Numbered from the stretch's first letter, positions 9,001-54,286 are shown. The stretch: 64,000 nt of DNA from Botryllus schlosseri (GCA_051294905.1 CM119374.1:8432001-8496000); one strand, 5' to 3'. Numbers and translations: made by a program. The notes: a model not told the origin generated them from the letters alone.

Positions 9001-12000
9001 TTCGCGGGCCGAACAAAATATGGTTGCGATCAAAACATTGTTGACTGACTGGAAATGGACGCGGAAGGAGCATTGGAAATGGACGTGGAGTTGGAGGACG
9101 GTGACATTGAGTCGTTATTGGCAGCAAGAATATCAAAGGGATTCCAAGAGAAGTGGGATTTTCCAATGGGCCTTGGTGCCATTGATGGAAAACATATTAC
9201 CATTGAGGCCCCTGCCGAGTGCCAAGTCGGGATCAGAATTTTATAACTACAAGGGAAATTATAGTATTGTGCTTCTCACTGCATGTGACTCACAGCTTTG
9301 CTTCACTCTGGTAGACATAGGTGATTCGGGGAGACATAGTGATGGTGGGGTATTTTCGAATTCGACCTTCGGAAGTAAGTTCATGAATGGTCAACTAAAT
9401 GTGCCTGATGATGGCTGCCTACCTCAGTACCTGGGACAGATGTACGTGTTCCCTACGTCATAGTTGGAGATGCGGCATTTCCATTCCGCAGGAATCTGAT
9501 GAGACCCTATCCCGGCAAACAATTGCCATCGCACAAATCTATTTTCAATTACCGATTATCACGGGCACGGCGTGTCATTGAAAACGCATTTGGCGTGATG
9601 GCAGCGCGGTGGAGAGTGTTCCGGGGCACCATTACTGCCGAGCCCAAACTTGCCACTGACATTACGAAAGCTGCATGTTGTTTGCACAACTTCTTGCAGC
9701 TAAGATCCTCGTGCACACTCTCAAACCTTGGCATCGCACCAGCCACTTCCAGTGATTTTGGAGGCCCTACAACCACTTCTCAAACCGGGACCACGTCTCG
9801 AACTGGGAGACTGGGGTCCAATATGTACAGCAACGAAGCAAAGGAGGTGAGGGAGAAATTTACCAATTACTTTATGAGCAATATTGGCAGAGTTGCATGG
9901 CAAGAAGCAGTGGTAAATCGCGTGTGAGGCTGTGAGCTCATCGACTCTGGTGGACCACAAATCTGCTTTGGATATTCTGGGACCCCAAATCTGCTTTTGA
10001 ATATATTGCTAGACGAAATGACACTATCCGATGTACATTTGATTGTTAACCACTGTTCCAAAACATTAATATTCTTTCATTCACATTACTGGAACAGTTT
10101 TTATTAAAGAAAATATGAAAATTGCTTGTGTGAACATAGTGTTAAGCAGTGTATAACGAAGTATAGTATATCACAGATCAAGAACGAGTACTATAGGGGC
10201 AAGTTAATGCATTCATATTGAAACAGTTTTTACTGAAGAAGATATGGAAATTGCTTGTGCGAACATAGTTTGACATTAGGGTATAACGAAACACATACAA
10301 CTAAGTACAGAATATACAACTAAGTACAGAATATCACAGATCAAGAACGAGAACTAGGGGCAAGTTACCGCATAAGAAAGGTAGAACCACAGCGAAAGAC
10401 ATGAAAAATGTCAAAAGCAAAAAATGCAGTGAAGAGAATTTAGCATGTATCAACACAGAGGTAAACAACAATGTCAAAAACATACAGCCAGACTTGTGCA
10501 ATCTACCAATTTAGTTAATTGACGTGGTGACTAAGTTACGGATTTCGAAAACTGAGTAAGTCCTAGTTCTAATTGCAGATTTTGAAAATTGAATCGTTCT
10601 AGTTTCGTATTTTCAAAAGCGAGTAGTTATAGTTCTAGTTGCACATATCCAGTCGTCATACAACATACATCATTCTGCATCCTGTGCATCAATAACTTGT
10701 GTCTCGAGTGAAGACATCTGCTCACCCATGAATTGCATAATACAGCTCATTGTAGAAATAGCTTTGACTGGTGGCAATTTCTCCAGCATCTTTGCAACCA
10801 TGCTGCCAAAGTGGGCATATTCGTTTCTTGGACGGTTTGCAAGATGAGCAGTAAAGTCATTCATTGATTTAACGTTTTGGCTCATGAAGTCGGATATTGC
10901 GGCCTGCATATGGAAAATATAGGAATATCACCACTTTCAATAACTTTACTTGTACTATAAGCAGGGCTCTGGAGCCGGTGCCATGCATTTTTACCGGAGC
11001 TGGAGCCGGGGCTCTACATAAAATTCAGCCGGAGCTGGAGCTAGTTATTTGAGGGGTAGCTCCGGCTCCGACGTATTTCATAAGATGCTATTATGCAACA
11101 ACCATATCTACTGAGTTCACATAATTCAACAGCAGGCCTTCGCGAAATCAAGATTATTTTCATCTTTGTTGCTGCAACCAATGTTACTGACGGCTGACAG
11201 ACTCTAGATTACTATAGATAACTAACCTAATCTATATAGACCAGGGGTGGCCAGCCTTTTCGGCTAAAGGGCCACATGAAATTGACGAACGAGTGCGCTG
11301 CCAACTAGCCGCGCCAGGCGTGTAAAATTTTCAAAGTTAATATTATTAATACTTGGGTATATTGCGGGTCGACTGTATACCGCCCACTGGGCTCAGTTTG
11401 CAAGGACAGGTCTATTCGGCATCTGGACATCTCGATATCGAAGATTTCCGCTAATATACGACAATCATATTATTTTGTGCCTAATTTCATCGTCAACGAT
11501 CTTTCTGCGAGCGCAGACGCGAAAAGACTTTCTCTCATAATTGTGAATATATTTCGACTCAATCGGCTAAATCAGGCGTTTTGTCTATAAGCCTTCATCA
11601 CATACAACTCACCTGGAATTCTTGTTTATCAGCATATTTCTTCCTCTTTCTAGAGACAACTTCGGTATGTGAGCTTGTTGGCTGATCCGCATGATGTTAG
11701 GACTTACGGTTTATGCTTCAAATGATCAAGCAGAAAAGACATGGACTGATAATGAGTAAACTCCTTGATAGTGCTTGCGGCAGAGCCACTGCTTTTGGCT
11801 TTCTTCAACTCGCCAACATATTTGCTGAACCTGTCTCGGAGTTGTTTCCAACGTTTTTTGCAGTTTGTCGCTGTAAACAATGTGAAAATTAATAAAAAAC
11901 ATCAATCATTATACTGTGACATAATACATTTATTTACAACTCCCTACCGGACAATTTTTGGTCATGTCGGTGTGACGAAATTGGTCACCGTAAATACTAT

Positions 12001-26068: not shown

Positions 26069-27372
26069 CAAGTAGGGATGATGTGAACGTGAGGTTCACG
26101 TTCGCGTTCTGTGTGTGAACCTCGGAAAATTTGAGGTTCGCGTTCACAACAGAACCTTGGTAGGTTCTGCACTGTGAACCTTTTTCATATATTGCAATTT
26201 TCACTTCATTATAACATCTTTGGTTCAAATTTATTGACTTTCAACTGCGGGCCACTTGCTATGCATGGAGCTGGCAGCATAAACATTCAACACTAAACGA
26301 GCATGCCCTTGACAATCTCAAAAAATATTGTTACAAAAGTTTGCTCGAAATATCCAGCTTTCCGTTTGTGCATATTTAGTGTCTCTGTGCTGTGAGCTTG
26401 ACCCGCAATCACATGACATCAAGAGTGAAATACACTGTATTTTGTCAGCGAATGATCCTAATTCAACCAATCAATGAGATTGATTTCGTCTTCTGATGTA
26501 AAAATCTAGCAGGCGTACGGGGTCAATCTTGACTAAATATGTATACTGTATCATAAAAACCAGATCCGTGCGACTGAGATGTTGGCTATACTGCTGTATA
26601 ACTTGTTAATGGGGTAATATCGGTAGCAAGTATAGAAACCCATTTTACACTCTGCTCAATATCCGTGTGGCAATACTCAGACGCCGAATATACATTGTCC
26701 GATCAGGTCGAAATTTATGGCAAAGCGACGCAAGATACCGATTTTATGGGATTATTATATCATTTGATTGCCTCAGTTGATACATTTGGCGACGTTTAAA
26801 ACGTCAATATGTATACTTAAGTACTGAGCTATTATGAGGCCCCGAGTCGTCGCTCTATGCAGTACCGGTACTTATGCATTGCTCTAAAGCTCGGTTTTTA
26901 ATTTGTTTTACCTGTAGAATAGATCTCGGTAATAAGAAAAGAAGTCCTGTAATATTGAGATGATTTATGTTGTCATGTTGTAGAATAAGGTGTGTCAATT
27001 ATAGTCAAATAGGTTAGATAAAGTCTATGAAATAAGTTATGCACCAGGCTTCTATAATTGCCGTTTTAGCGAGTGAAGCCATGTGATTTGACAGCGACAT
27101 TGTTATGGAGAGTATATTGTAGAGGCCTTTGCTCAGATAGGAAGTTTATTCACTCAGTCGTACTCAACAATCCAGCAGCGACGAGACCAAACACGAAAAA
27201 GACACACCAATAAAAACTTTTTTCCCCACCACCGCAAATGGTGGGTTTTGTTCTACATATATGTTCTGCATGTGTCGTAAGGTGACCGGAGTCGCGATTA
27301 CATTTATTTCTATATTAAAAAAAAAAAAAAAAAAAAAAATTTTGTGGTAAACTAACAATTATAACAATTTTG

Positions 27373-27394
27373 TGGAGTATTTGGTTGTATTAAG
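27373..27394 (+). other. Spliced-leader sequence at the 5' end of the Tx1 element
   Basis: TGGAGTATTTGGTTGTATTAAG followed by GT matches 22 of the 24 nt of the stolidobranch SL as I recall it. The motif recurs at 32899 and 32955. Confidence 0.7.
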
Positions 27395-28007
27395 GTTCGC
27401 GTAAGTATATAACGGCTATTTACAGGAGCAAGGAACGAACCGGAGCCGCTGTGGCGATAGTTTATACTTACCGTAAACGTTAGTTAATTTTGCAGTACCT
27501 AGGCTAGAATTTTCACTTAGGCTATTTTTCTCCTTCATATTTTCTCCTTTTCATCGACGGATTTCTACTTCTACTTCGGGTCTCCTTCAGACTCAAACCT
27601 CCTCCCTCCTTGGGCCTGACTCGTCTTCGTGAGTCAGGTCTAAAGGAGTCTGTTCCTACCTCCACTAGAGTTTGACTCGTCTTCGTGAGTCAACTCTAGT
27701 CGGAGTCTTTTCTCTTCAAGTCTTGACTCTCTCTCTCGAGTCAAGACTTGTCGAGTCTTTTCTTCTCTCTCGCGCCTCTCCCTTGGGCGACGAGAGACTG
27801 TCTAGCCTTAATTAACAACACGCTACGACACTGTCTAGACAGTGATCGTACGATCTTCCTGCTGTACTGAAACTGCAGTGTCGCCTTTAGCAAAGCGCGC
27901 AGAAAACGCCTCCAAAAACGCTCTATTAAGCGACAGTACAGCTTCGAATTAAAAAGAACGCAGTCTGTAGGCTAGCCCTCAAGCAACAGCAACTTGGCAA
28001 TACACAG

Positions 28008-29255
28008 ATGGCGTACGCAAGTGCACTACTAAACCAAAACAGAAACAGAATAACATATGGCTACAGGCCGCGATCCCTGGATATAGCTGCACCTCTAGGA
28101 AGCAATGCGGTAGACATCATTGACGCAATAACCAAACATCCACTCTTGAAAGAACGAAAGGATACAATAGAATCCATCTTCCAAATAGGAAGATCAACCT
28201 TCAACCTTACCTTCCATACAGAATCCCCTGTAGAAAGCCTGTTAGAAACCTTCCTTCAAGCTACCGAAGAAGGCATAGCAACAGCCACCGGCACATTGCA
28301 CCTTCATAAACCACAATTACCAGCGGTGCAAATCAACATAAGGGCTGTGCCGACAGAAGTAGACAACGAAGAAATAGAGCAAACAATCAACAGGCTTGGA
28401 TGCGGTACAATAAGAACAATCAAACACATCTACCACAGGGGAACCCAAATACACAATGGATACAGACAGGTAACCATCGATAGATACGTGCCTGGGAAAA
28501 TACCACCCTTCCTATATTTAGGCAGAGCGCCCTGCAAGATCTACCTACCTGCAGCCGAAGAGATAAACAGATGTTACAGATGTCTGAGAACAGGGTATAC
28601 CGCAGCAGACTGTCCAAATGAAACGGCCTGCCTACTCTGCAAAGAATACGGCCATAAAAGAGACCAATGTCCAAAAAACAGAAGTCCAGAGGATGAAATG
28701 CAGCTCTCCAACACAAACCCAGGGGAAGAACAAACACAGCCTGAAAATGAACAACAACAACAAACACAGAGCCAACCACCTATAGATAGCCAAAACATCA
28801 TTGAGAACTCTGAGGCCGAGAACTCTGCGGACGAAAAAGAAGATCTACAAGAAGAACCACATGACTTCTTTAACCTAGCAGACAAGACCCCGCCTACACC
28901 AGAAAACTCAGAACTAGATACAACAATAAGACCCGGAGAGGAAACAGAACTCAACAGCGAAAATGAACAAAATAACACAACAGATGAGGAACTGCAAATA
29001 ATAACAAGCGACGAAGAGAAACAACAAGACGCAGAAATAACCCTAACCCAAAAAAAGTCGAAAACAATAAAAAGCCGAACAGGCCAAACGGCAACCATAA
29101 CAAGGAATTGGGAAAGATGAAACTTCACCGCACAGGAATTCTTTAACGCACCCTCACCAAACAAAAGACAACAAAGCGACCGTAGCCCCACGACACAAAA
29201 CGAAAGCTCTGCAAGAAGGAAATTACTGAAAGCAGACATCGAACTGAAAAAGTAG
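28008..29255 (+). CDS. Tx1 ORF1p (RRM-like region, two zinc knuckles, acidic tail); premature TGA at 29118-29120
   Basis: CYRCLRTGYTAADC and CLLCKEYGHKRDQC knuckles. The frame stays open past the TGA to a TAG at 29253-29255, just before ORF2. Confidence 0.85.
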
Positions 29256-29280
29256 CCAGCCCCTGTCCTGTCTAATCCTA

Positions 29281-32200
29281 ATGGCGATGAATATCATATC
29301 CCTAAATGCCAATGGAATGGGAACACATTGGGTAAAAATGAAAAATTTACTCAGATGCGAAAAGAATTGGAATATTATTTGTATCCAAGAAACGCACAGA
29401 GCAGACACAGAGAAAATAGAAAAATGGGCACAACAGAATGACTTACTTTATTATCCAAATCACATTACTGTAGGACAAAATTGGACGGACATGGACGAAA
29501 ACAAAAAACACTACTACAGAGGCACTGGGATATTCGCCAGAAAGGACTTAAAAAATAAATACCACATAAAACACCAGATAGTAAGACAGGACAGGATACA
29601 GACACTACGACTAACCGATAAAGAAACAACCGACATCGCTACCCTATACAATGTGTATGGACCCAGCGATGTCGGAAAATACCAAACTGACTTCTACCGA
29701 GAATTAACATGTCATATAGAAAATAACACCCCTGAGAGCGCGATTATCTGTGGCGACTTTAATGTCGTCACAGATAAGAAAGACTCTAAGAACATCGACA
29801 ATTTCAAACTTACGCCTGCTGCTAAAATATGGAAGACCTTCATAGAAACGAATAAGATCAGAGACATATGGCGTTGGCGAAACCCAAATAAAAAACTATA
29901 TACAGTAATGAAAGCGCATCAATCCCGAAGAGTAGATAGAACCTACGCCTCGGAAAACCTACTCCCGCGGGTGAAAAGAAGCGAATACAAACTCAACAAC
30001 GTAGCTGACCATATATTCATGCAGAAAACACAGGTAGTCGAACCACTGAACATCGCATGGGGAAAACCACTATGGAAAAACGACATCAGACTCTACTCTG
30101 ACGAAACCTTGTACAAAAAAATAAAAATAACCCTTAAAAAATGCGCGAAGAAGAAACATAGCTTTGAAAACGTGTACCAATGGTGGGATTATTTAAAGAA
30201 AGAACTAACCAAACATAGAGGAAAGAAGAAAGATCAACATCCTCAGAGGAAATATAAACCGAATACAAAACAATGTAACTATGGCAGACGAAGCCATAAA
30301 ACAGATAAAGGAACTCAAAAAAGATCGAGAATGACAAACTCTGAGACATAGATGCACGCTTGACAAACTGAGACATAGATGCACGCTTTATAAAATGAGA
30401 GACATAGAGGAGAATGAAAAACCAACGAGATATTTCTTCACAAAAATAGCCCAGCGAAAGCAAAGCAAAATGATTGCAGCAGTTCTAAACCAACGGGGCA
30501 AAGAACTTACAACCAAAGAAGAAATCATCCAAGAGGTTTATGGATTCTACAACAATCTATGGGGGAAATCTCCCAGTGAGAATCCCCGCCTCCAAGAAGA
30601 ATATGCTGCAGAAATTGCGGACATAGAGGCAACCGAACAAGAACGAAAAGACCTCGAAACGCAAATAGACGAGACTGAGATCAAAACGATCCTAAATAAA
30701 ATGGAAAGCGGAAAGACCCCAGGGTCTGACGGGCTCTCCAAAGAATTTTACCAAACCTACTGGTCAATCCTCAAGAAAGACCTACTAGAGGTGATTAATA
30801 ACGCCTACTGCTTTGGAGGCTTGTGTCAAACATGGATGGAGGGCACAACTACCGTAATCTACAAAAAAGGAGAGCCAAAACTTTTAAAAAACTGGAGGCC
30901 AATAACCTTATTAAACACAGATTATAAAATACTAACCAGCATCTTGGCGGCAAGATTGAAACCCATACTCCCAAATTTTATTCTTGGAACACAAAAATGC
31001 GCTATTCGCGGACGACATATAACAGACATACTAAGAAATACTCAGGCAACATTTGAACACGCAACGGAAAGAAAACGAGAACTACTTATTGTAAACTTGG
31101 ACCAGGAAAAAGCTTTTGACACGATTAATCACAAATATCTCTACAGTATACTCGAAAACTACAGACTCCCCAAACCCTTCGTCCAACTGATAAAAAACAT
31201 ATACAACTCCGCAAAAAGCAGAATTCTAGTAAATGGCGCCCTAACAGATCCCATCAACATCAAAAGGGGGATAAGGCAGGGGTGTCCACTGAGCATGTGT
31301 TTATATGCCATCAGCTGTGACCCCCTGGCCAGAAAAATAACGAAAAACGAAAAAATAAGACCTTTCAAAATAGGCAGCGAAAGTATAAAAATACAACAGT
31401 ACGCCGATGATATCACGTGCTACCTTGGGAGAGAGGAGGACATCGATGCCGTATTCGAAGAATTCCAAAAATATGAACGGGCAACCGGGCAAAAATTAAA
31501 TCCAGAAAAAACAGAAATATTGCACATCAATTCGAGAACAGGAGCTAGAACAGGAAAATTCGAGAATCAAAAAAAAGAACGGATTAAAATATTGGGCCAA
31601 TACTTCGGAAAAAACCAATACAATGAAACCTGGACCGAAAACAGACTAAAAATACTACGAACCCTGATGGCCTACAGGCACAGAAAACTGACCTGGATGG
31701 GAAAAAAGGCCATCTTGAACTCCCTGGCAACAACAAAAATTCTGTACAATGCCCGAGTTATACCACCGAGTAAAGAAGATCAAAAAGAACTCGAAAAAAT
31801 ATATTTTAAATTCTTATGGCATCCCCATAAAATGGAGGCAATATCACGAAAAACGCTGATCGCCGAAAGAGAGAAAGGAGGACTCAGAATCCCAGATATA
31901 GAGTCACGCATAAGAGCAATAGAACTCGAAAAAATCGCAACGTTAAAAAATCTGGAAAAACCAACCGAAATATGGCATAAATATGCCATATATGAGGTCG
32001 GAACAAAAATAAAAGCTATACGGCCCAGTCTCTATAACAACAACGAGAGACACAAATATCCTACACCGAAAAGATGGACAGAAAGTATAGACTTGGCGAA
32101 AAAAATCGGATGGGAGGAAGAAGAGTGGAAAGAGAGTTCCCACAAAGAACTGTATAAAGAAATAAAAAATCTCAAAGAAAACGAGATAGAATTCCGAACA

Positions 32201-32740
32201 CAACACGGAAAGAAAATAAAAATGACAAAAATAACCAAAACCAAATGTTTTGGGAAAAACATGATAACTAATAGTGAAATGATCATAAACTATCGAGTAG
32301 CACATGACGGGTATATATTTGGACAGAAAAAAAGAATACGGAACTTAACAGAAGACAAAAATGGCAGGAAATTACTTCTGAACTGCAAATTTTGTAACTC
32401 GAGCAATGATTGCGCAAAACATATATTCACTGAATGCAAATACATCGCAAAATTGAAAAGGAAAATCCAAAAAACGCTAGGACTCGAACTAGACAACGAC
32501 TTAATAATGTACAATACCGGAAGAAAAAAAATCAACTGGATCATTGCATCGATCATGAAAAAGGCGATATTAAACCTGAAGATCGCTCTCGACATTGACA
32601 ATAAAAAAATAGAAAACGAAGGATTGGAGATGAAAATCCTACGAAAAATCAAAAAACGACTAGAAAGCCTAGATAACAACAAACAGGTGACCCAACTAGT
32701 CAAAAAAATAGAGAAAAGACTAGATAGAATAGGAAAATAA
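29281..32740 (+). pseudogene. Tx1 ORF2p (APE endonuclease, RT, C-terminal CCHC), frameshifted near 30240-30395
   Basis: IISLNANG, CIQETH, ICGDFN, RVDRTY, DH; KTPGSDGL, WRPITLLNTDYKIL, DQEKAFD, RQGCPLS, QYADD; CKFCNSSNDCAKHIFTEC. An approximately 27-bp tandem duplication lies at 30341-30395. Confidence 0.93.
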
Positions 32741-32898
32741 TAGCGAAGTGAAAAAAAAGGGCCAAAAAATGGGGGGAAAATGAAGATCAAAAACTCGGAA
32801 AAGACGTGCCACAGAAGAACCAACCTTCTCCTGTGAATGGAAATATCAGGAGGACACAAGACCCACACCCAATGTCAACATAGAGTATCTGAGTTGAG

Positions 32899-32923
32899 AT
32901 TGGAGTATTTGGTTGTAATGAGG
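32899..32923 (+). other. SL-like motif inside the Tx1 3' UTR
   Basis: ATTGGAGTATTTGGTTGTA (19 nt identical to the SL 5' part) followed by ATGAGG instead of TTAAGG. Confidence 0.7.
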
Positions 32924-32924
32924 C

Positions 32925-32955
32925 ACTACGCTTGATCTTAGCCATAAAGGCCGAG
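32925..32955 (-). ncRNA. U2: Antisense fragment of U2 snRNA (about nt 8-37)
   Basis: The reverse complement CTCGGCCTTTATGGCTAAGATCAAGCGTAGT differs from canonical U2 CTCGGCCTTTTGGCTAAGATCAAGTGTAGT by one insertion and one substitution. Confidence 0.88.
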
Positions 32956-33404
32956 GAGTATTTGGTTGTATTAAGGTAAGCATCGGCCTGGCTGATGCGG
33001 AACCCTTGTGGTACAACCGATACTTCCAATCACTTGTACACCTAGGAGAAGTATGGCCGTCAGGCCTTCATGCTCCGCACCGGGATCTGTGTCAGCTTGA
33101 CTGGCCAGTATCCCAGTCACAAGTATGGTGGCGGCGGGACAAGCCTCCGCAGACGCCCCCAGCCAAAGCCTGCTTGTGACAACTGTTTGCACCAACAAGT
33201 GACGAAACTTATTGGAGAAAAAAGCAAACAGGAAGCAACCTTTTGGGAGCTCTTGGGTCCTTTCGACCCAAGAGTGACCTATTAAGGCGCTTGTGGCAAT
33301 AGTCCGGTGGTGTAGTGCCACATGGGCTGCCGCAAGCGTAACGGGGTGGAGGTTTACTGCGGTTCCTCCAGGTTACCCCTAAAAAAAAAAAAAAAAAAAA
33401 AAAA
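32930..33404 (+). mobile_element. 475-bp non-autonomous poly(A) retroelement (SINE-like) with a U2-antisense/SL head
   Basis: Perfect 17-bp TSD TTGTAATGAGGCACTAC (32913-32929, 33405-33421). (A)24 tail. 3' hairpin GTAAC..TGGAGG/CCTCCA..GTTAC. SL GGAGTATTTGGTTGTATTAAG followed by GTAAG at 32955-32980. Confidence 0.88.
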
Positions 33405-33670
33405 TTGTAATGAGGCACTACTGCCCGAAAAGGCGGAAACACAAAAATAAATAAGAGAAAAATAAAGAAGAACCTGTCACACTTGCCTAAGCACTGTTCA
33501 AACCCCTCAGTTAGAAAGGAAAAGGAAAAAAAAATAAAAAATAAAAAAGAAGAACCTCAAAACCCCCAGACCGGAGCAGGCACCTATACCAGATGTAGAG
33601 AGGGCCTGCGATGGTCTGGGTATCCGGAGAGCCGCAAAAAAAAAAAAAAAAAAATATTTATTTCTAGATT

Positions 33671-33691
33671 GTACTCGCTTCGGCGGTACAC

Positions 33692-33727
<36 letters not shown>

Positions 33728-33734
33728 GGCCCCT
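33671..33734 (+). ncRNA. U6: U6 snRNA 5' portion (nt 1-64), interrupted
   Basis: GTACTCGCTTCGGCGGTACACATACTAAAATTGGAACGATACAGAGAAGATTAGCATGGCCCCT includes the ACAGAGA box and compensatory 5' stem changes. I found no U6 3' half in the window. Confidence 0.95.
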
Positions 33735-36095
33735 ACCTGCGGTTCTTCTCTGTTGGTGTCCCGAATTTTGCGTCACTGAGCTTGTTGCAACCATGGCAAC
33801 CTGAGCTTGCAACCATGGCAACCTGAGATTGCGACCATGAAACCTTTGCGTGCAACCATGGGCATCAAAACAATGAGATTGCCCTCCTGATCTGGTAAGA
33901 CGGAGTCTGGATGGCTTTCAAGTCACATAGATATTTCTGCTCACGTCGCTACACCACCTATCTGAACGGCGTACGTGATTTATGAGTACACAATACGCAC
34001 ATAGAAGCGGAAATAGCGTTGTCAATTTCTACCTACCTGCCCGGGCAATTATAAAATAGAACCACTTTGAGGTAGTTGGAAAACTCTGCTACTTGAAGTA
34101 GAAGGAATTACTTTATTACTGGTCACCTCTATTGAGAACAAGGCGAAGTCATGCTGCCGTGGGCCGGCGGGAGAGGGTGGATAAAAATACGAAAAAAATA
34201 CTCCTCTTTCTGTTCTGGATCACACAGTCGCTGCCTACTTCTTTCATTGCATTCTAGATCAACCATTTCTGGGATCACTCGCAATATGTCACTATATTGT
34301 CTTATACCAAAATACTCACATTATTCTACTTGCTGCAAAGGACATCTCCCTGCGAATCCACTGCAGAATTTGAAAGCAAAATTATCTTCAAGTTTTATCA
34401 GAACACCATGATGGTCACAACGAATTGTAGAAATCAGTATTGCAATTTACAGACATTACTACCAAAACAATCACAGGAACGAAACGGAACTGAAGGCAGA
34501 AGCTTTCACATTCACAGTCTTAATATCAAAGCATAAAATGGTGCATGATTCAAATGCTCAGAGCCAGAGGTCAATTATTGCAATAACTGCAACAGCGTAC
34601 TGCAGTGTAGAGGAACTAAAATAACAATAACAAAGTAAACATTTAAAAAACTAGAATGGACACACCAATCGGAGTCAATTATTGCAATATATGCGATAAC
34701 AAATGAAGCACTTTCAGGAAATTGAAACACAGGAAATTGAAACATGACTATAAGCTAGTCAACTTGGATGTTACAGTTGTAACGCAAGAGTGAAACATCA
34801 AATACAATACTAAAATATATCATATTGAAAGCACCAGGCACAGCAAATAGGTCCAGACATCTATCAGCACAGTATAAATGAAGAAATTGGCAGTACAGAA
34901 AAATCGTTACGAAGATGCAAAGTAAAATTCACAACATGATTAGCAGAAGCCCACAGTTGAAAATATTATTGTTATTGTAATAAAACATTGACTGCAAAGG
35001 AATCATGATGCATCAAGTAATAGAAAGCATTATTTTCGTGCCGCGCGTCTGCCATACCCTTTCTTTTTCAATTCATTCAGCCAAACATCATGACTGACAT
35101 TGGACGTTGCAGCACAAAACTGATTACCGTAAAATTGTTTATGGCTATCAGTATTCCTGGGACTGCCACATTTGCTGCATATAGGTGGTCCGGTTCTCGG
35201 CGCATATTTTTTACGAGAGCACATGCCAGCAGTTTCTTCGACAGAACGCCTCTTCCTGTAAGATAGCGTGCTGCGAGGAATCGATGAGGCTGGAGGCGCA
35301 GCAGCAGATCGTATCTTAGCAGTGCCAAAAGTATTGTCTGACATATTTGGTACAAACTTCTCGAGCTGGACTTTTGGAGTAGGTAGCGCTGCAGGTTTCC
35401 CTTGGCCCTGTGGTAAATCATCAGTAGCTGTTGCTGCATCATGAATGCGAATCCCCTGGCGCAGAACAGCTCTTTCCATTCGTGTCTCGTCATTTTTATA
35501 CCTAAAGAAGAATATTGAATCACAAAAAGGACTTATAATAAGTCTAATAATTATTCATACCAGTTCAGAATTGTCCTCTGATTAAGTTCCGGCAATTGTA
35601 TGCTTGTATTTGTCATAATAGTGCTATTGTTCAGTACACACTTCCGGATATTCTTGTATGCAGTTCCCACATGTGACCAACGGTCTTTACTACCTGGAAT
35701 CCATACGACAGTTAATGACGAATTGGATTGCGACTTCGGTAAGCACAGGATTTCATACTGAGAAATAGATCGCAAAGTTTTGATACGGTTTGCTCCACGT
35801 ATCTATTGCAGTCAGGTCGCTGGGCAGGTCCAGAGCTGCTACCGTAAAAGCACCTACAAAATAGAAATATAAAAATATTAGGATATATATGTATAACTTG
35901 AAGATTACAAAATAACTTACTTTTTTGTAGCTACTACACCCGGTGTTGCATCAGATTTTGAAGACTTGAATCTTCCACCTGGATTTTAGCCTTTCTGTAC
36001 ATAGGTGCAAATGTAGTAGGCTGTTGATCATAATGGTGAAGTCTGGACCACAACGTTAATATACGTTCGGCGTCTCCTTCACTCAATGAGCCATT
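33735..36095 (-). mobile_element. Dada-U6-like DNA transposon remnant (terminus plus transposase C-terminal exons)
   Basis: Starts at the U6 break. TCTTCTCTGT (33744-33753) is the inverted repeat of the U6 ACAGAGAAGA (33711-33720). Approximately 22-bp subterminal repeats follow. Minus-strand fragments ERILTLWSRLHHYDQQP, RCFYGSSSGPAQRPDCNRYVE, IQLPELNQRTILNWY and ICSKCGSPRNTDSHKQFYGNQFC resemble Dada/DUF6729-type proteins as I recall them. Confidence 0.7.
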
Positions 36096-36099
36096 ACAA

Positions 36100-37150
36100 T
36101 TGCGGAAAGTGATAAGAGAGTCAGCGAAATATGAATTGGGAAGTAAAATTCTCGACATAAACAAGAGGCTATACTCCAATTCCTTACCGCATAGACATAA
36201 ATGCACTGAAGAATGGAATAGCATATTAACAACAGTCCAATCAATGAATTGGACTGAAGAACAATGGATAGAAGCTACACACAAAAAGACCTATCAAGAA
36301 TTGAAAAAACAAAATGAATCTCCGACCACAATCCCTTTATAAAATGGACGAGCCGTTAATTGGAAAAAAGTACAAGAAAGTAACGGAAGTAGAAACGTGA
36401 TTAAGAACAAAGAAAGAGTGAACAACATTAGAATTGCAACGAGAGGGTACTTCTTTGGTGAAGACAAGAGGAGATTATGCCTACTCGACATAGGGATACA
36501 GAACAGAGTGAATATGAACTGTAAATTTTGTAATATCAGACAAGATAATATAAAGCACATAATTCTATCATGTCCGTTCACACAAAAAAATTTTCAAAAC
36601 TTTAGAAGACTCATTCAAACTCAAAATTTAACTTTAGATAACATCATGTATAATGAGGACCTAAAAGATAAAAATGATTGGACTATAATAAGCATTATAA
36701 AAATGGAACTAATTAAAACTAAATTAGGCCTTGATAAATGCAATCAATCCATATTGTCGAGTAAAACGACAGAAAAAATCCTCACACAGAAAATACTAAA
36801 AAGCTAATAAAAAGAATAAGAAAATTTGTGAATTCAAAAGAAGAGCAACTATTCAAAAACGAGTTGTGCTTCTTGCAAGAGGAGCGCATCTGAATTTTTT
36901 CAATAAGGAAAAAAGACAAGGTCTCATCAATATCGATGAAGCGAAGAAGGACTTGGGCGAATGACGACAAACGGAGACGAAAGGAGGACGAGAACGATGA
37001 ACAAACAAGAAAGAAGACAAGGACGACGAAAGAATGACGAACGACAGCGACGAATCGAAAGAACGGAACGGAGGAAGAAAGGCCACCCGAAGAGAAACGG
37101 AGAAACCTTTTGTGAATTGATTGTGAATTTGAATGTATGTTACAAATACA
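36100..37150 (+). mobile_element. 5'-truncated fragment of a second, diverged Tx1 family
   Basis: ORFs 36100-36342 and 36397-36807 are in the same frame with one TAA between them. They align by eye with the C-terminus of the ORF2 above (AKYELGSKI vs AIYEVGTKI; CKFCNIRQDNIKHIILSC vs CKFCNSSNDCAKHIFTEC). A purine-rich 3' UTR follows. The right boundary is approximate. Confidence 0.8.
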
Positions 37151-37934
37151 GAAATTTTCATGCAATGTCGCTCATTTTTGGATACAAGGAGTACAGATTT
37201 TTTCTTCTTCTACAATTTGATTCTCGCAATACATATTTTCTGTCAATTTCATGCATTTTATTTTGACTACATTTGGGTTCGCCGTGGCAGCCCGTAAAAA
37301 AAATTCAACAAAAATATGTGCATTTTCCATTATGTTGATATTTTGCCGAAATAAAATATTACAAACAAAAAAATTGTATCATAAAAACCAAATCCGTGCG
37401 ATTGGGGCGTTGGCTACTGCTGTATACCTTGTTAGTGGGGTAATATCTGTAGCAAGTATAGAAATCCGTTTCACACTGTGCTCAATATCAACGTAGCAAT
37501 ACTCAGACGTCGAATACATTGTCCGGTCTGGCCTAGACCGTTAAGACGCAAGCATATATTCCCTTGCAAGTACTTGTGGAAATTGTTGGCAAAGCGACGG
37601 ATGGGATTAATATATAATTTGATTGTCCCAAATATGTATTTCAGCATTGTGGCATTATGTGGCCCGAGTTGTCGCTAGGTATCGTGTAGTGTACATTAAT
37701 ATAGGCTATCATTTCACTGAGATGTAGGGTCGGAATTAGCAAAATGACGTAATGATGTTCACGTTCGCGTTCACTCGAACCTGAGCTTTTCAGAGGTTCA
37801 CACCATCCCTGCTTGATAATAAAGTATTCCAACGAGAAGCAATGGCACGAGGCAACATTTTTGATTCCGTTGACTGGTCCGGCCCGCGAGCGATTTCATG
37901 ACTTGGATCCAGCCCGCGATGCAATTGGAGATTG

Positions 37935-39282: not shown

Positions 39283-42200
39283 AGAATTAATTAATAATTA
39301 ATTAATTACTTCAACTTAACCTAACTTCTGAACTGACGCATCACTGCTGTTAATGCCTGCGAAACGATCTGGATATATCGCACCTGGACGTACCCGCCGT
39401 GGGACCAAGCGGATGACCCCAGAGGACTCGTCAACTCCGACCACACAGGAACACCAAAGAGAAGATATTTCTCAACATGGCGCCTGTGCAACACCGAACT
39501 GTGGCTCACAAAACAGCTCTGCTGCAAAAGAGAAAAAGAAGAGACACAGATGGAGTAAAGAAGAGTATAAAGAAATAATGAGATGTTACTTCTTAGCCAA
39601 ATTTGAAAACTCGGCAGGAGTAACCGAAGGAACTTTTCAAAAATGGAAAGAGAGAACGAACAACTCTCCAACCATGACTGCCAATACCCTGGCAACAATG
39701 AGACGTTGTGTAATAAAAAATAAAAAATTATCTGAACAAGAACTCGCAGAAATCGAGGGAGAAATGTGTAACAAAAACATAGAAAACTCTGAGGCAATGG
39801 AACTGCAATTCGGCCAAGATGACCTGAACCCACAACAATCACTTGATGACCCGAACATCGCAGAAGTAGAATTACAAAATACCACCGGGCACCCGAATGA
39901 ATCAACAACACCTAACGATGGCGACATAGACACGGAATTAGAATTGGAGATCAAAAATCAAATCATCGACCGCATGAAATCCACATTGAATGTAAATGAC
40001 AGAGTGCAGTTACCTGACTTACAAATTACAAAGAAACTGAAAACTGATATTGCAGTAGCGAACAAAATTTTGACAGAAACCATACTACCTGCAACTCTAA
40101 ATGACAAACAAGGAGAAAGACCACAATGTCCCTTGACAACAATCAACAACCTCATTTACAGCACTGCGGCAGTTATCTCAGAAAGGCACTGCAAAATACC
40201 AAGAACTGTCAACAAAAAAAGGGGAAGGCATACGCCAGCTTGGCAACGCAGAATTGAAAACAAAATCGCAAAACTAAGGTGTGACGTTGCGATACTCTCA
40301 GAACTAAAAAAAGGAAATGTTTCCCGCAAAGTAAAAAATAAAGTAAAAAGAATAGAACTGGAGCACCAAACCAAACTGCAGTCAACAGAAAAAGTGACAA
40401 TGTTGCAAGAAGAATTAAAAATGAAAATATGCACCAAAGCACAACGATTGAAACGATATAAAAAACGAGAAACACAATATCGCCAAAATTTGTTATTTGC
40501 TCGCAAACCTGGACAATTTTTTCGAATGATGAAACAAAAGTCAAATCAAAAAATTACCAGCAGCAAAATACCAGCCACTGCAGATGTGGAATCATTTTGG
40601 AAGAAATTATGGGAAACCAAAAAATTGCACAACTCAAATGCAAATTGGATACAAGACCTCCACACTGACCATCTACAAACACCAGAACAACAATGGTCAG
40701 AAATCACAAAACAAGAAATCAAGGAGGCCCTAAAGAGTTCACTGAACTGGAAAGCAGCTGGTCCTGACCAGATCAAAAACTTTTGGCTAAAAAAACTAAC
40801 TGCAACACATAATTACCTAGCGGTGACCTACAATGAGCTTTTATCCTCAACCAGCTCGCACGAGATCCCAGCCTGGTTCACACAAGGGATCACCTATCTT
40901 ATTCCAAAAAATGAAAACACCAGGGACCCCAAGAACTACAGGCCAATATAACATGCCTGACAACCATGTACAAAACACTGACCAAAATCCTGGCAAAACG
41001 AAGCTACAAACACCTAGAAAATCTTCTACCGCCTGAGCAGAAAGGATGCAAGGAAGGCGCCCTTGGCTTTAAGGACCACCTGCTCCTTGACAAAACCATT
41101 CTTGAAAACTGCAAGAGGAGACACACTAACCTCAGCATGGCATGGATAGATTACAAAAAAGCTTTCGATTCAGTCCCTCACACGTGGATACTGAAAACAA
41201 TGCGTATGTACAAAATGAATCCGATCATCATCAGATTTATTGAAAATTCAATGAAAAATTGGCATACCAAACTGTTGATCAAACATGACCAAGGCGAAAC
41301 AGAAACCTGTACAATTCAGATATGCAATGGTATCTTCCAAGGCGACTCATTCTCACCACTTCTATTCTGCCTCAGCTTAGCTCCACTCAGTGAGTTGCTG
41401 AGAAAAAATGAAACAGGATACGTGATGAAAAAAGCAGCAAACTCTGAAGGTCAAAAGATTCATCACCTTTTGTTCATGGATGATCTGAAACTGTATGCGA
41501 AATCCGACACGGACCTGAATAACCAAATGAAAATTGTTCATGAGTTTTCGGAAGATATAAAAATGAAATTTGGCTTGGATAAATGCTCAAAACTTACCAT
41601 ACGACGCGGAAGAGCCACCAGCACTCGCGACATGAACTTCAAAATGGACGAAACCATAACAGAATTGAATGCCGAAGATCACTATAAATATCTAGGGATC
41701 TGTGAAAGCGACAACATTAAACATGCTGCAATGAAATCAAGTCTAAAAAAAGAATACATTAGCAGGCTCAAGTCAATTCTCAAAACTGAACTCAATTCCA
41801 AAAACAAAATCAATGCCATAAACAGTCTTGCAGTGCCTGTCTTGAGATATAGCTTTGGTGTGGTGAACTGGCGTAAAGATGAAATTAAAAAATTGGACAC
41901 AAAGACGAGAAAACTGATGACAATGCACCACATGCATCACCCAAAATCTGATACACAAAGACTGTACATCCCCAGAAAAAAATGTGGTCGAGGACTACAA
42001 GAAATTGAACAAACCTTCAAAACAGAAATCATCGGCTTGTCACAGTACATCAACAACAGCGATAACATTTACTGCAAACTCATTGCACAGGAAGACAAAC
42101 AGCGCAAAACAAAATCTCTGAGCTATCGTCACGACAAGTACGCCAGAGAAGTCAACTTGGAAACAGCTAACCTGTACACTGCAGAAAACACTGTTGCTAA

Positions 42201-43426
42201 ACCCACAACAATAGCAAAAGCAGCACGAGTCCGATACAAAAATGCAACGCTGAAAATGAGAGAAACGATATGGGAGTCGATGCCTCTTCATGGACAGCAC
42301 AAGAAGTTAACTTCACAGCCCCATGTAGACGAGCTTTCATGGACCTGGCTATCCAGCTCTGGCCTGAAACCGGCAAGCGAAGGATTCATTTTCGCAGCAC
42401 AAGACCAATCGCTTCCTACAAAATACTATCGCAAAAGAATTCTGAAGCAAAACACGGACGGCAAATGCAGAATGTGCCACAACCAAAATGAAACTGTAGC
42501 ACATCTCATGTCCGGCTGTGGTGCACTTGCAGCTACCGAATACACATGGAGACACAATAGGATTGGTCACTACATTCATCTTGAATTATGCAAACATTTC
42601 AACATCACCACTTCGACAAAAAATTGGTACGATTACAGCCCAGCACCAGTGACAGAAAACGAACAAGTAAAAATTCTGTGGGATGTACCAGTTATAACTG
42701 ACCGCGAAATCAGGAGCAACCGCCCGGATATAATCGTCAAACTAAAAAAGAAAAGAGAATGCTTATTCATTGAACTGGCTGTCCCAGCTGATCACAACCT
42801 ACTGCAAAAAGAATCAGAAAAATACTCCAAATACGCAGACCTCAAAATGGAATGTGAGAAAATGTGGCGATGCAAAATAAACATTGTACCGATAGTCATT
42901 GGTGCTACAGGGGTCGTGAGCAAAAAACTCATGAGACATATCCAACAAATTCCGGGTAACGTTCGATTCGACATGATCCAAAAGATCACATTATTGGGCA
43001 CTGTGCACATTCTTCGGAAGGCCTTGAATGCACCACTGGACTAAAATTACGCTGGTGAATCACAGCATAATTTCTGTAATTTCGATTCTTCATCTTCAAT
43101 CATCTCTACCTCTGCTCTGTAACCCTTGCCAATTCTTCATCTGCTGCAATTCTGTAATCTGACTTCTCCGTGTATTGCATAGGAATAACAATTTGAATGT
43201 ATTACTGAAATTTTAAAAATTTACTCCAATCTCGCCATTTTCCTTTGGGGGCAGGTTGCTCCCCGGATTATGTGTGTATCTACCAGTTTTACTGTGAATA
43301 TAGAATATAATAATAATAATAATAATAATTTTAAAAATTTACTCCAATCTCGCCATTTTCCTTTGGGGGCAGGTTGCTCCCCGGATTATGTGTGTATCTA
43401 CCAGTTTTACTGTGAATAAAGAGAAT
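39283..43426 (+). mobile_element. Full-length R4/Dong-clade non-LTR retrotransposon (restriction-like endonuclease)
   Basis: 12-bp TSD AATAATTAAATA (39271-39282, 43427-43438). (TAA)n tail. One long ORF. Confidence 0.88.
39353..43044 (+). pseudogene. R4/Dong polyprotein (Myb-like N-terminus, RT, CCHC, REL), one 2-bp frameshift near 40950
   Basis: RHRWSKEEYKEIMRCY, WKAAGPD, YRPI/TCLTTMYK, WIDYKKAFDSVPH, GIFQGDSFSP, LFMDDLKL, CRMCHNQNETVAHLMSGC, RHN, NRPDII, IELAVP, KYSKY. Confidence 0.92.
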
Positions 43427-52495: not shown

Positions 52496-54286
52496 CCACG
52501 CAATCACCGGTTGACCGAAGAATAACAATTGTACCCACGTACATTTTCCATTGAAATTTCCAAGTTAGTTATATTTTTTTGTACGGTATGCCGTATTTAT
52601 TGGTCAGAGCGTTTAAATACTGTGCTTTAGGGAAGTATAGCACATGTTGCTGCACCAGTTCTCTCTCCATTCGTCTTTTATTTTTATCATCCTTTCTGCC
52701 CCTTCGATCAGCTATCGTCATGCCAGTCGTCCCACTTCGTTTCCTCTACCTTCGTCTCTTGCCTTAGCTGCTCAAATCCATCATGAGTCCAGAGATGTGT
52801 GACATCATACTAAGAGAAACAAATCGAAGGCTAGAAGAGTTTATGAAGCTTTCAACAACAATCTCGCAGAAAGATTTCGTAATGCTTCTGAACAGCCACC
52901 ACTAAGAACATTCGAGCCCTTTACTGAAGTTGAGCTCAGTGCATTTATTGGCATCCGTATTGCTGCTGGTGTACACAGGAATAACAAAGAGAATCTGGAC
53001 AATATGTGGAAAGTAGGTGCTTTGCTTCTTATACGTGCAGCTATGTCTCGTGACCGCTTCAAGTTGATGCTCAGATTTATCAGATTTGACAACGATAATA
53101 CACGTGCAGAGCGTGTGCGAACAGATAAAGCTGCACCAATACGAGATCTGTGGCTAATGCTGAATAAAAATTTGGAGAGAGCCTACAAGCCACATGAATG
53201 TATCACGATAGATGAACAATTGTTTCCAGTTCGAGGACATACCAAATTCACACAGTATATACCATCTAAACCAGCTAAATATGCCATCAAGGTGTTCTGG
53301 GCTTGTGATGCATCAAACGCCTACCCGCTGCATGGTCAGCTTTATACTGGAAAACCAATAGATGGTCGCCGACAAACAAATGTTGGTGAGCGAATAGTTT
53401 TGGACCTGGTCTGTTTGTATAAAGCCTCTGGAAGAAATGTCACCACCGATAATTTCTTCACTGGTATGCAGCTAGCTAAAGTATTGAACACCTGGGACAT
53501 GACTTTAGTTGGAACAGTCAGAAAAAACAAAGAGGTTTTTGCCGAGCAACATGCAGCCTGGCAAGGAAAGAGCACTTCACTCGACCAATTTCGCCTACCA
53601 TCGAGATGCAACAGTCTGTTCATATGTGCCAAAGAAAAACAGAGCAGTTGTGCTTTTATTATCCATGTACAATTGCACATGACCGGGGAAGTCGAAGCAA
53701 CACAATCAAGCAAACCAGAGATAATCAGGTACTATAATAAAACCAAAGAGGGGTGGACACAATGGACAAAATGGAAAATCGAGGAGCTACACCGATTGTT
53801 GGCAGTTGCTATGTCTGCAGAGATCAGAAACGAAAACAACGTAAAACCAGGAAAGGGTGCGTGGCTTGCGTTCAGCCTGTGTGCGACGAACACTCCATAA
53901 CAAAAACAAAGTGTATTACTTGTGACACTTACTAAACCCATCTCGACTAAGTTTTCTTTCATATTTCTGTGTCAAATAAATCATTTCTGTACTATGTTTC
54001 ATGCAACATTCCAAAAATTGTATTTGTGTTATGTATACTGGCATTATTTAGATACACAATGTGCAAGGGTACAATTGTACCCATACCGCCTGTTAAGGGT
54101 GTAAAAACAACTCGACCCTAAATCTCGGTAACGTGTAAAGATTTTTTGCCGACATTTAGTCTGCATAATCTAACACAGAAATGTAGAGATGTCAGGAAGT
54201 TTCAGGTCTCTCGGGTTTCTAGAAAAAAGACTGTCGTATTTTAAAATTGGAATGGGTACAATTGTACCCATGCAGTCGGACAAAGG
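52496..54286 (+). mobile_element. piggyBac transposon relic with frameshifted transposase (about 52780-53935)
   Basis: MSRDRFKLMLRFIRFDN, ITIDEQLFPVRG, YIPSKPAKYAIK, VTTDNFFT, LVGTVRKNK. Cys-rich C-terminus CYVCRDQKRKQRKTRKGCVACVQPVCDEH. Right end ...AAAGG then TTAA (54287-54290). The left boundary is less certain. Confidence 0.9.

Follow-up and report, generated by a model that had tools for sequence, protein, structure and literature searches.

A nest of mobile elements carrying spliced leader, U2 and U6 sequences in the genome of Botryllus schlosseri

Introduction

What does it mean when pieces of the spliced leader (SL) RNA and of the U2 and U6 small nuclear RNAs (snRNAs) crowd together at one place in a chordate genome? 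The question is raised by a 64-kb stretch of Botryllus schlosseri DNA (GCA_051294905.1 CM119374.1:8432001-8496000, at C4:8.46 Mb), hereafter the window. A first-pass annotation had noticed there SL, U2 and U6 sequences intermingled with long and short interspersed elements (LINEs and SINEs) and a Dada-like DNA transposon, and had proposed a set of elements exploiting snRNA and SL genes, perhaps on the remains of a gene cluster. Our analysis leads to another history for the site. The block at 27317-37313 (window coordinates, plus strand unless stated otherwise) is made of mobile elements nested in one another, and the SL, U2 and U6 pieces are cargo of these elements. We put at roughly 0.75 the probability that the nest was built by successive retrotransposition events and that the site never held an snRNA gene. 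On this account the three kinds of sequence converge here because each came on RNA and because the SL-type elements provide fresh targets.

Results

Architecture of the insertion complex

The block is enclosed in its entirety by the terminal ~170 nt of a fragment of a host retroelement, LINE-H, which was overlooked in the first reading of the window. The left half of this 3' end (27209-27316) is 79-85% identical to 3' ends abutting U2 nt 39 at four C14 loci, and the right half (37304-37374) runs to an A-rich terminus with no U2 after it. Of the C14 3' end, positions 24-133 correspond to 27209-27316 and positions 127-187 to 37314-37374, which directly continues the left half. No promoter-bearing SL, U2 or U6 gene was found in the block, and no further snRNA besides the U6 piece scored above the Rfam threshold across the 64 kb.

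The identity of LINE-H was read from its C14 relatives. There, U2 matches begin at U2 nt 39, each preceded by a common ~190-nt retroelement 3' end; the 3' junction reads ..ACAAACAAAAAA/ATCTGTTC at the four loci (a slash marks a junction), and the 5' junction follows U2 nt 38. A promoter-bearing U2 gene at C14:22196490 is split after nt 38 by the 5' end of LINE-H. In one C14 copy, the last 283 aa match the zinc-finger/restriction-like endonuclease (RLE) end of an R2 protein (E 6e-16). These features suggest that LINE-H is a U2-gene-specific RLE retrotransposon of Utopia/YURE type. Two lineages of U2-targeting retrotransposons have been described, Utopia/YURE in the NeSL clade and Keno, which carries an apurinic/apyrimidinic endonuclease (APE) and uses the same U2 site (PMC4640811). 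Keno (APE, Tx1) was considered for LINE-H and rejected, as the C-terminus is of RLE type. LINE-H adjoins the same U2 position as Utopia/YURE and has the C-terminal zinc finger and RLE of Utopia; the likeness is one of target and C-terminus. Unlike those elements, the window copy is off-target, outside any U2 gene, and 5'-truncated to its ~170 terminal nt. It would form the base of the nest.

The U6-Dada-LINE#2 block

The broken U6 of the first-pass annotation is genuine. It comprises U6 nt 1-62 (33671-33734; Rfam 58.9 bits, model positions 1-62) and forms the 5' end of a block that continues through a Dada transposon into a second LINE. It has no promoter: the 3' untranslated region (3'UTR) of LINE-H reaches to within 0-6 nt of the U6 +1 position, and neither a TATA box at -30 nor an upstream motif is present. 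Real U6 genes, including the Dada-bearing ones on C12 and C13, have a TATA box near -30, and an upstream motif is common to several of them. The sequence 5' of the window U6 was considered as a U6 promoter common to the C12 locus, and this was rejected, the sequence being LINE-H 3'UTR.

Directly after U6, a Dada-U6 DNA transposon is represented by its left 2.39 kb (33735-36127), with the transposase C-terminal exons on the minus strand; this is the Dada-like element of the first reading. The subterminal repeat TCTTCTCTG lies at 33744-33752 and, in sister copies, 14 nt inside the element end. Sister copies are present on C13 (89% identical and extending further), C12, C3 and C17. Three of them read U6 nt 1-70 ..GCGCAA/AGGATACCTGCGGT TCTTCTCTG, that is, ..CCCCTGCGCAA/AGGATACC, and the window copy has an 11-bp deletion at this junction that took GCGCAA and 5 nt of the Dada end. 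A 149-aa open reading frame (ORF) of the transposase C-terminus (35030-35479, minus strand) contains a CCHC finger spaced CxxC-x8-H-x8-C, against CxxC-x9-H-x8-C in Dada-U6_DR (PMC3706591); searches of Pfam and the protein atlas with this ORF returned nothing usable. The window holds no right Dada end, and the DDE part falls outside the fragment.

Described Dada-U6 elements insert between U6 nt 70 and 65, duplicate GCGCAA or GCGAAA and encode on the opposite strand a DDE transposase with an N-terminal CCCC finger and a C-terminal CCHC finger; they have a subterminal repeat and no terminal inverted repeats (PMC3706591). The element found here shares with them the U6 site, GCGCAA, TCTTCTCTG, the opposite transposase and a CCHC finger of near-identical spacing (Kojima & Jurka 2013, PMC3706591; Kojima 2022, PMC8869645). 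It differs in its tunicate host, the hosts in PMC3706591 and PMC8869645 being fish, water flea, oyster and polychaete, with only the untargeted Dada-1 reported from Ciona (PMC3706591; PMC8869645). The window copy differs further in being a 2.39-kb fragment inside a retrocopy, with the 11-bp junction deletion.

Dada ends at 36127, whereas the C13 copy goes on past that point. It is followed by LINE#2 (36128-37303), a 5'-truncated, L1/Tx1-like element consisting of an ORF2 C-terminus with one stop, a 3'UTR and an A8 tail that adjoins the resumed LINE-H sequence. LINE#2 is collinear with residues 533-749 of the ORF2 of LINE#1, the larger LINE of the nest (37-39% identity). One other genomic copy was found (84% identity), its homology stopping in the A-run, and the piece examined of the C11 copy gave no alignment at the Dada/LINE#2 junction. 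Genome-wide, this junction had no second instance and no source locus.

Because U6 begins at +1 on one side and an A-tail closes the block on the other, an RNA-mediated chimera formed in one event is the best explanation, which we hold with moderate confidence. A single retrocopy would have started at U6 +1, comprised U6 nt 1-70 and the adjoining 2.39 kb of Dada, and been fused to the truncated LINE#2, most likely when the LINE#2 reverse transcriptase (RT) switched template onto the transcript of a Dada-disrupted U6 gene. The product resembles the U6-L1 chimeric retropseudogenes of mammals, in the account of Buzdin 2002 and Garcia-Perez 2007 given by PMC4494074, where the 5' end of an snRNA at +1 is fused to a 5'-truncated, A-tailed LINE. 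It is unlike them in its very short duplication and in its template, a transcript running from U6 +1 2.4 kb into Dada and not mature U6.

U6 and Dada could instead have arrived as DNA, through a one-ended or otherwise aberrant Dada transposition carrying U6 flank, LINE#2 having later removed the rest of Dada. Dada-U6 copies with non-U6 sequence on one flank are known, and one-ended transposition has been proposed for them (PMC3706591). This route is unlikely here: a left boundary within 0-6 nt of U6 +1 is accounted for by a transcript start and not by DNA breakage, the right boundary is an A-tail against host sequence, and no remainder of Dada follows LINE#2.

The spliced leader and LINE#1

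The 25-nt leader GATTGGAGTATTTGGTTGTATTAAG is identical to the 'Chordata 1' SL consensus (PMC3795323). In SMART-type RNA sequencing data labelled as the same species, reads numbering in the hundreds to thousands pass from the template-switch oligo through GAT into TGGAGTATTT; the leader directly follows the oligo and is therefore the organism's spliced leader, located at mRNA 5' ends. Its 14-nt core AGTATTTGGTTGTA occurs in the window at 27376, 32904 and 32957, always on the plus strand, with 0.07 matches expected by chance, which bears out the three copies counted earlier. Each belongs to an element. The first (27373-27394, SL nt 4-25) is the 5' head of LINE#1, the second (32898-32929) is an SL-like motif within the LINE#1 3'UTR, its identity to SL confined to the first 20 nt, and the third (from 32956) is a SINE head running on into SL-RNA-like intron sequence. 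RNA runs X5, X7 and X9 were examined over 27200-33190; tandem SL-SL reads, with one leader end joined to the next leader start, were seen 11 times in X5 and 3 times in X9.

LINE#1 (27373-33654, ~6.3 kb) is a full-length, L1/Tx1-like element. Its SL head is followed by G, T and the 5'UTR, in which look-alikes of a splice donor (27401-27408) and of a branch point and acceptor (27410-27425) can be recognised. The body (27395-32929) comprises the 5'UTR, ORF1 (28008-29120), ORF2 and the first part of the 3'UTR. The APE part of ORF2 spans 29281-30351 (Pfam Exo_endo_phos, 9.7e-12) and the RT part 30395-32740 (RVT_1, 1.3e-36), the frame being broken by a 29+27-nt tandem duplication at 30333-30388. The best solved relative is human L1 ORF2p (1e-49). 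Two LINE families are thus present, as the earlier annotation had it, one with APE and RT domains and the other collinear with its ORF2; that annotation called both Tx1, and here they are termed L1/Tx1-like. In the 3'UTR, the first 20 nt of the SL-like motif equal SL nt 1-20 and are followed by AATGAGGCACTAC; the motif is the landing site of the SINE and is unbroken in the C12 and C13 sister copies, where it is contiguous with the rest of the 3'UTR (33422-33654, with an A19 tail at 33636-33654).

The target-site duplication of LINE#1, as read from the sequence, is ATTTATTTCTATATT on the left (27302-27316) and ATTTATTTCTAGATT on the right (33656-33670), the right copy adjoining U6 +1. The two fit ATTTATTTCTA[T/G]ATT, with 14/15 bases identical, and both are LINE-H 3'UTR sequence. 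Inside the duplication, upstream of the leader, there is extra sequence (27317-27372) made of A23 (27317-27339) and a 33-nt stretch (27340-27372), for which a genome-wide search with a 31-nt pattern found neither a second copy nor a source. It may be the transduced flank of a lost master copy. The leader of this off-target insertion lies within the duplication and therefore travels with the RNA.

Relatives of LINE#1 show where such elements normally insert. The leader stands at the start of at least 12 diverged 5' ends of the family (72-95% identical) with unrelated DNA upstream, and other 5' ends sit straight behind the A-tail of another LINE or SINE. Between the leader and the LINE 5' end, copies differ in having G, GT, GTA or GTAAG of the SL intron. 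At the other end, the tail adjoins T[A/G]AGCATCG, the SL donor or a look-alike, in 18/28 distinct loci; four of the 18 are the SL-RNA intron start TAAGCATCG, and the remaining ones are a look-alike, ..AAATTTGG/TGAGCATCGTTT, which lies in a palindromic repeat; SL-headed SINEs with the same 12-bp duplication are hosted by this repeat as well. The C12 copy, the closest to the window LINE#1 (92-95% identical), is lodged in an SL-headed SINE at AAGG/TAAGCATCG, with leader and AAGG on the left, TAAGCATCG after the A-tail on the right, and a 14-bp duplication belonging to the host SINE. Where the SL/LINE junction has been regenerated, copies of LINE#1 type are also found in head-to-tail stacks. The endonuclease is not an RLE and the junction does not lie within the SL exon: the domain is APE, and the junction follows AAGG at the exon/intron boundary. 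From these junctions we conclude that the LINE#1 family is probably specific for the SL exon/donor junction. The suggestion that each insertion offers a new target thus holds for the SL-type elements, whose SL-headed copies restore the site.

Several further observations touch this family. About 10 of the ~40 LINE#1-type 5' ends lie within 125 kb on C14 (22.16-22.29 Mb) together with three U2 fragments; these copies are found behind LINE or SINE A-tails, beside U2 genes split by the Utopia-like element (small pieces were read at L036-L038, L041-L043, L047, L048, L053, L059, L096, L099 and L100). Several LINE families (L062, L063, L067, L068, L073) have the last ~85 nt of the tail in common, and in several of them, although their 3'UTRs differ, an SL-like motif followed by GGTAC or GGCAC and a small stem occurs 200-330 nt before the A-tail. 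On sequence, the motif looks like a conserved SL-RNA mimic.

How the leader came to head the LINE RNA can be judged from the same junctions. The 1-5 nt of SL intron behind the leader are better explained by joining within the first few bases of that intron than by precise trans-splicing, and the RNA would begin with the leader through co-transcription with the upstream part of the target. The alternative is that LINE RNA is trans-spliced and that new copies are retrocopies of the trans-spliced mRNA. Diverged 5'UTRs have kept the branch point and CAG/G acceptor look-alike, the window leader lies inside the duplication, and at one C3 locus (L106) the leader is joined exactly at the CAG/G acceptor look-alike. 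We nevertheless consider trans-splicing an improbable general source, given that most copies retain G, GT, GTA or GTAAG after the leader, upstream of the acceptor, that 3' junctions adjoin the remaining intron, TAAGCATCG, and that the C12 copy displays both halves of the split SINE head. No SL-to-acceptor joint was seen in the RNA reads, at a depth too low to weigh against trans-splicing, and the Logan contig of a 57% identical homologue begins within the 5'UTR, contains no leader and does not cover the head. The L106 joint leaves room for some contribution of splicing. That locus (G000:C3:5093560-5093840) consists of a U6 retrocopy (92.6 bits) with A18, ~27 nt of a U1-like 5' end ATACTTACCTG, the leader and a LINE 5'UTR, and looks like a copy of a spliced RNA that gained its U1 piece by template switching. 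At a second locus (L030, G000:C2:22998731-23001757, ~1545-1625) the palindromic target repeat contains an SL-headed SINE, at whose 5' end there is a snap-back (inverted-repeat) copy of the 3' half of U6, A-tailed and with a duplication of its own. Pickup of snRNA sequence at 5' junctions is thus seen at loci other than the window.

In the window, LINE#1 inserted in full length with its 15-bp duplication, its right copy lying against U6 +1. When it inserted, its RNA was already headed by the spliced leader.

The SL-RNA-headed SINE and its U2 filler

The SL-headed SINE was correctly recognised (32956-33404, 449 bp). It consists of SL nt 6-25, a GTAAGC donor, a stem-loop, a segment complementary to the leader (anti-SL, 33013-33031), a body and a poly(A) tract (33381-33404), and it is flanked by the 17-bp duplication TTGTAATGAGGCACTAC (32913-32929 and 33405-33421). 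The site is unbroken in the C12 copy of LINE#1. Leader plus GTAAGC has 91 dispersed matches in the genome. Flanking duplications of 9-18 bp were found at half of 30 SINE loci (15/30), and most of these span ~445-455 nt; copies of the family are A-tailed. The head architecture is constant across subfamilies and the stem-loop sequences differ; the head folds at -31.4 kcal/mol (z -4.0), and RNA reads from SL nt 1 run unspliced into the subfamily-A stem. These features point to an SL RNA as the probable origin of the SINE head. The SINE core (~33091-33185) reaches ~300-fold read cover in X9 with differing flanks, which shows that the conserved core is widely transcribed.

Three other loci bear on SL-derived sequences. 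One on C2 (L003, G000:C2:12216898-12219924, ~1497-1560) is a very short retrocopy running from the leader through GTAAGCATCGGCCGAGTACGCTCG to T9 and A6, with a 17-bp duplication, and may derive from a short form of the SL RNA. Two others (L020 and L025) are paralogous units of more than 2 kb. Behind the leader, L025 shows an intron start of another kind, GTACGCATCTCGCTGGAGATG; a SINE body and a LINE tail fill the same site in L020. The units may represent a further type of SL-like gene that serves as a target.

Between the left duplication and the SINE lies the antisense U2. It is present as reported, with true U2 sequence limited to 26 nt (nt ~8-33; 32930-32955, minus strand) plus 5 nt of microhomology. 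A weak Rfam U2 match on the minus strand is genuine over its first ~31 nt only. The filler has one mismatch to a U2 gene variant at C14:22196453 and no other genomic match, and its end GTAGT overlaps the CACTAC end of the SINE duplication, which makes the 5 nt of microhomology. The antisense U2 ends at U2 nt 38, which is both the split position of the Utopia-like element (L100) and the end of the branch-point-binding GUAGUA.

The SINE thus entered the SL-like 3'UTR motif of LINE#1 with a 17-bp duplication. For the filler, we propose that the nicked top strand ..CACTAC served as a primer on the branch-point-binding GUAGU of U2 snRNA, ahead of second-strand synthesis on the SINE cDNA; antisense U2 of 26 nt would have been copied toward the U2 5' end, followed by a switch to the SINE cDNA. 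The order of duplication, antisense U2 and sense SINE matches such a U2-templated second-strand route.

Genome-wide distribution of snRNA genes

U6 loci are dispersed in the genome. U1 arrays were mapped to C6 and C2 and U5 arrays to C10, and for U2, good genes are on C1 and LINE-H-split genes on C14; none of these lies near C4:8.46 Mb. Rfam searches of 20 LINE-bearing loci gave no snRNA match at the gathering threshold. The decayed snRNA/SL gene cluster of the first-pass annotation, in which resident SL, U2 and U6 genes drew specialist elements in place, has in its favour that pieces of three small nuclear RNAs lie inside 10 kb and that each element family is a specialist for such genes, and is nonetheless very improbable, since two halves of one retrotransposon 3'UTR bracket the block, the U6 piece has no promoter, the U2 piece is a 26-nt antisense filler within a target-site duplication, a LINE and a SINE, each within its own duplication, account for the SL copies, and the 64 kb hold no further snRNA, the real arrays being on other chromosomes. 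The other half of the earlier proposal, that these families exploit snRNA and SL genes, stands: the LINE#1 tail is found at SL donor-like sites, Dada at U6, and LINE-H splits U2.

A motif like CACCGTAAATA(n)TATT was noticed ~50-60 nt 5' of several real U6 genes (L102-L105, L093-L094). Variants of CACCGTAAATA type also occur in the palindromic target repeat (~85 nt 5' of the hit site; upstream in L012 and L022), in the LINE-H 3'UTR (27226-27245) and in the LINE#1 5'UTR (27470-27480). Possibly the motif is a proximal promoter element of snRNA type that these repeats carry.

Outside the nest, the window contains other mobile-element ORFs at 39353-43044, 53004-53900 and 8852-9463. They include another LINE, which has RVT_1 and zf-RVT domains and does not resemble the nest at the DNA level, and two fragments, one from a piggyBac-like transposase (DDE_Tnp_1_7) and one Harbinger-like (DDE_Tnp_4).

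Discussion

Several points weigh against the history proposed here and temper its probability. The nest architecture was read from the assembled sequence alone. The duplication around the U6-Dada-LINE#2 block is only 3-5 bp long and ambiguous, so that the single-event origin of this layer is something we infer, and a 2.4-kb read-through from the RNA polymerase III promoter of U6 must cross several T-runs. For the A23 and 33 nt upstream of the LINE#1 leader, no source was found in the genome. The LINE#1 ORFs had essentially no RNA-read depth in the runs examined, and the transcript start was not observed. Finally, placement in the Tx1 clade is tentative; only one homologue bears the automatic name 'Transposon TX1'.

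Target-specific LINEs of the Tx1 clade are well known: Tx1L inserts in Tx1D, Keno in U2, and Tx1-Mar, together with SINEU, in Mariner-N4 (Kojima 2015, PMC4494074). The targets given in PMC4494074 include U2, U5, 5S, satellites, microsatellites and transposons, the SL donor not being among them. Like these systems, LINE#1 is an APE and RT LINE with sequence-specific insertion and snRNA pieces at 5' ends, its favourite secondary target is a DNA-transposon-like repeat, and a small-nuclear-RNA-headed SINE uses the site of the LINE. Unlike them, the target is the SL exon/donor junction, and the SINE head probably derives from SL RNA, not from U1 or U2.

In parasitising spliced-leader genes, LINE#1 resembles CRE, SLACS and CZAR of trypanosomatids and NeSL-1 of nematodes; unlike LINE#1, with its APE and its insertion at the exon/intron boundary, those elements use an RLE and insert within the SL exon. 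SLACS transcripts can start with the leader, the element lying downstream of the SL promoter. A class of SL-gene-specific retrotransposons is named in PMC4640811. Neither an APE-type SL-donor LINE, nor an SL-RNA-headed SINE, nor a tunicate Dada-U6 is listed in PMC3706591, PMC8869645, PMC4494074 or PMC4640811.

Taken together, the SL-type elements might form a guild: APE LINEs that insert at the SL donor and bear the host leader without trans-splicing, with an SL-RNA mimic in the 3'UTR, and a new class of SINE, built from SL RNA and with the same target, each copy reseeding the site. We offer this wider picture tentatively, at somewhat less than even odds. Were it true, parasitism of SL genes would have arisen independently in an APE lineage that targets the SL donor, the trypanosomatid and nematode cases so far known using RLE.

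For Botryllus, four specialists of small RNA genes occur side by side in a chordate, namely SL-donor LINEs, SL-headed SINEs, Dada-U6 and a Utopia-like U2 element. The window LINE#1 is among the clearest off-target copies displaying the leader as part of LINE RNA, and the junctions described here provide material for the study of template switching and second-strand priming by an L1/Tx1-like RT. If the proposed steps are true, a Dada-disrupted U6 gene would still be transcribed from +1 into the transposon, and U2 snRNA could act as a second-strand template via its branch-point-binding sequence. An accumulation of snRNA fragments is not necessarily the remains of a gene cluster; at this locus, every fragment is traceable to element-borne RNA.

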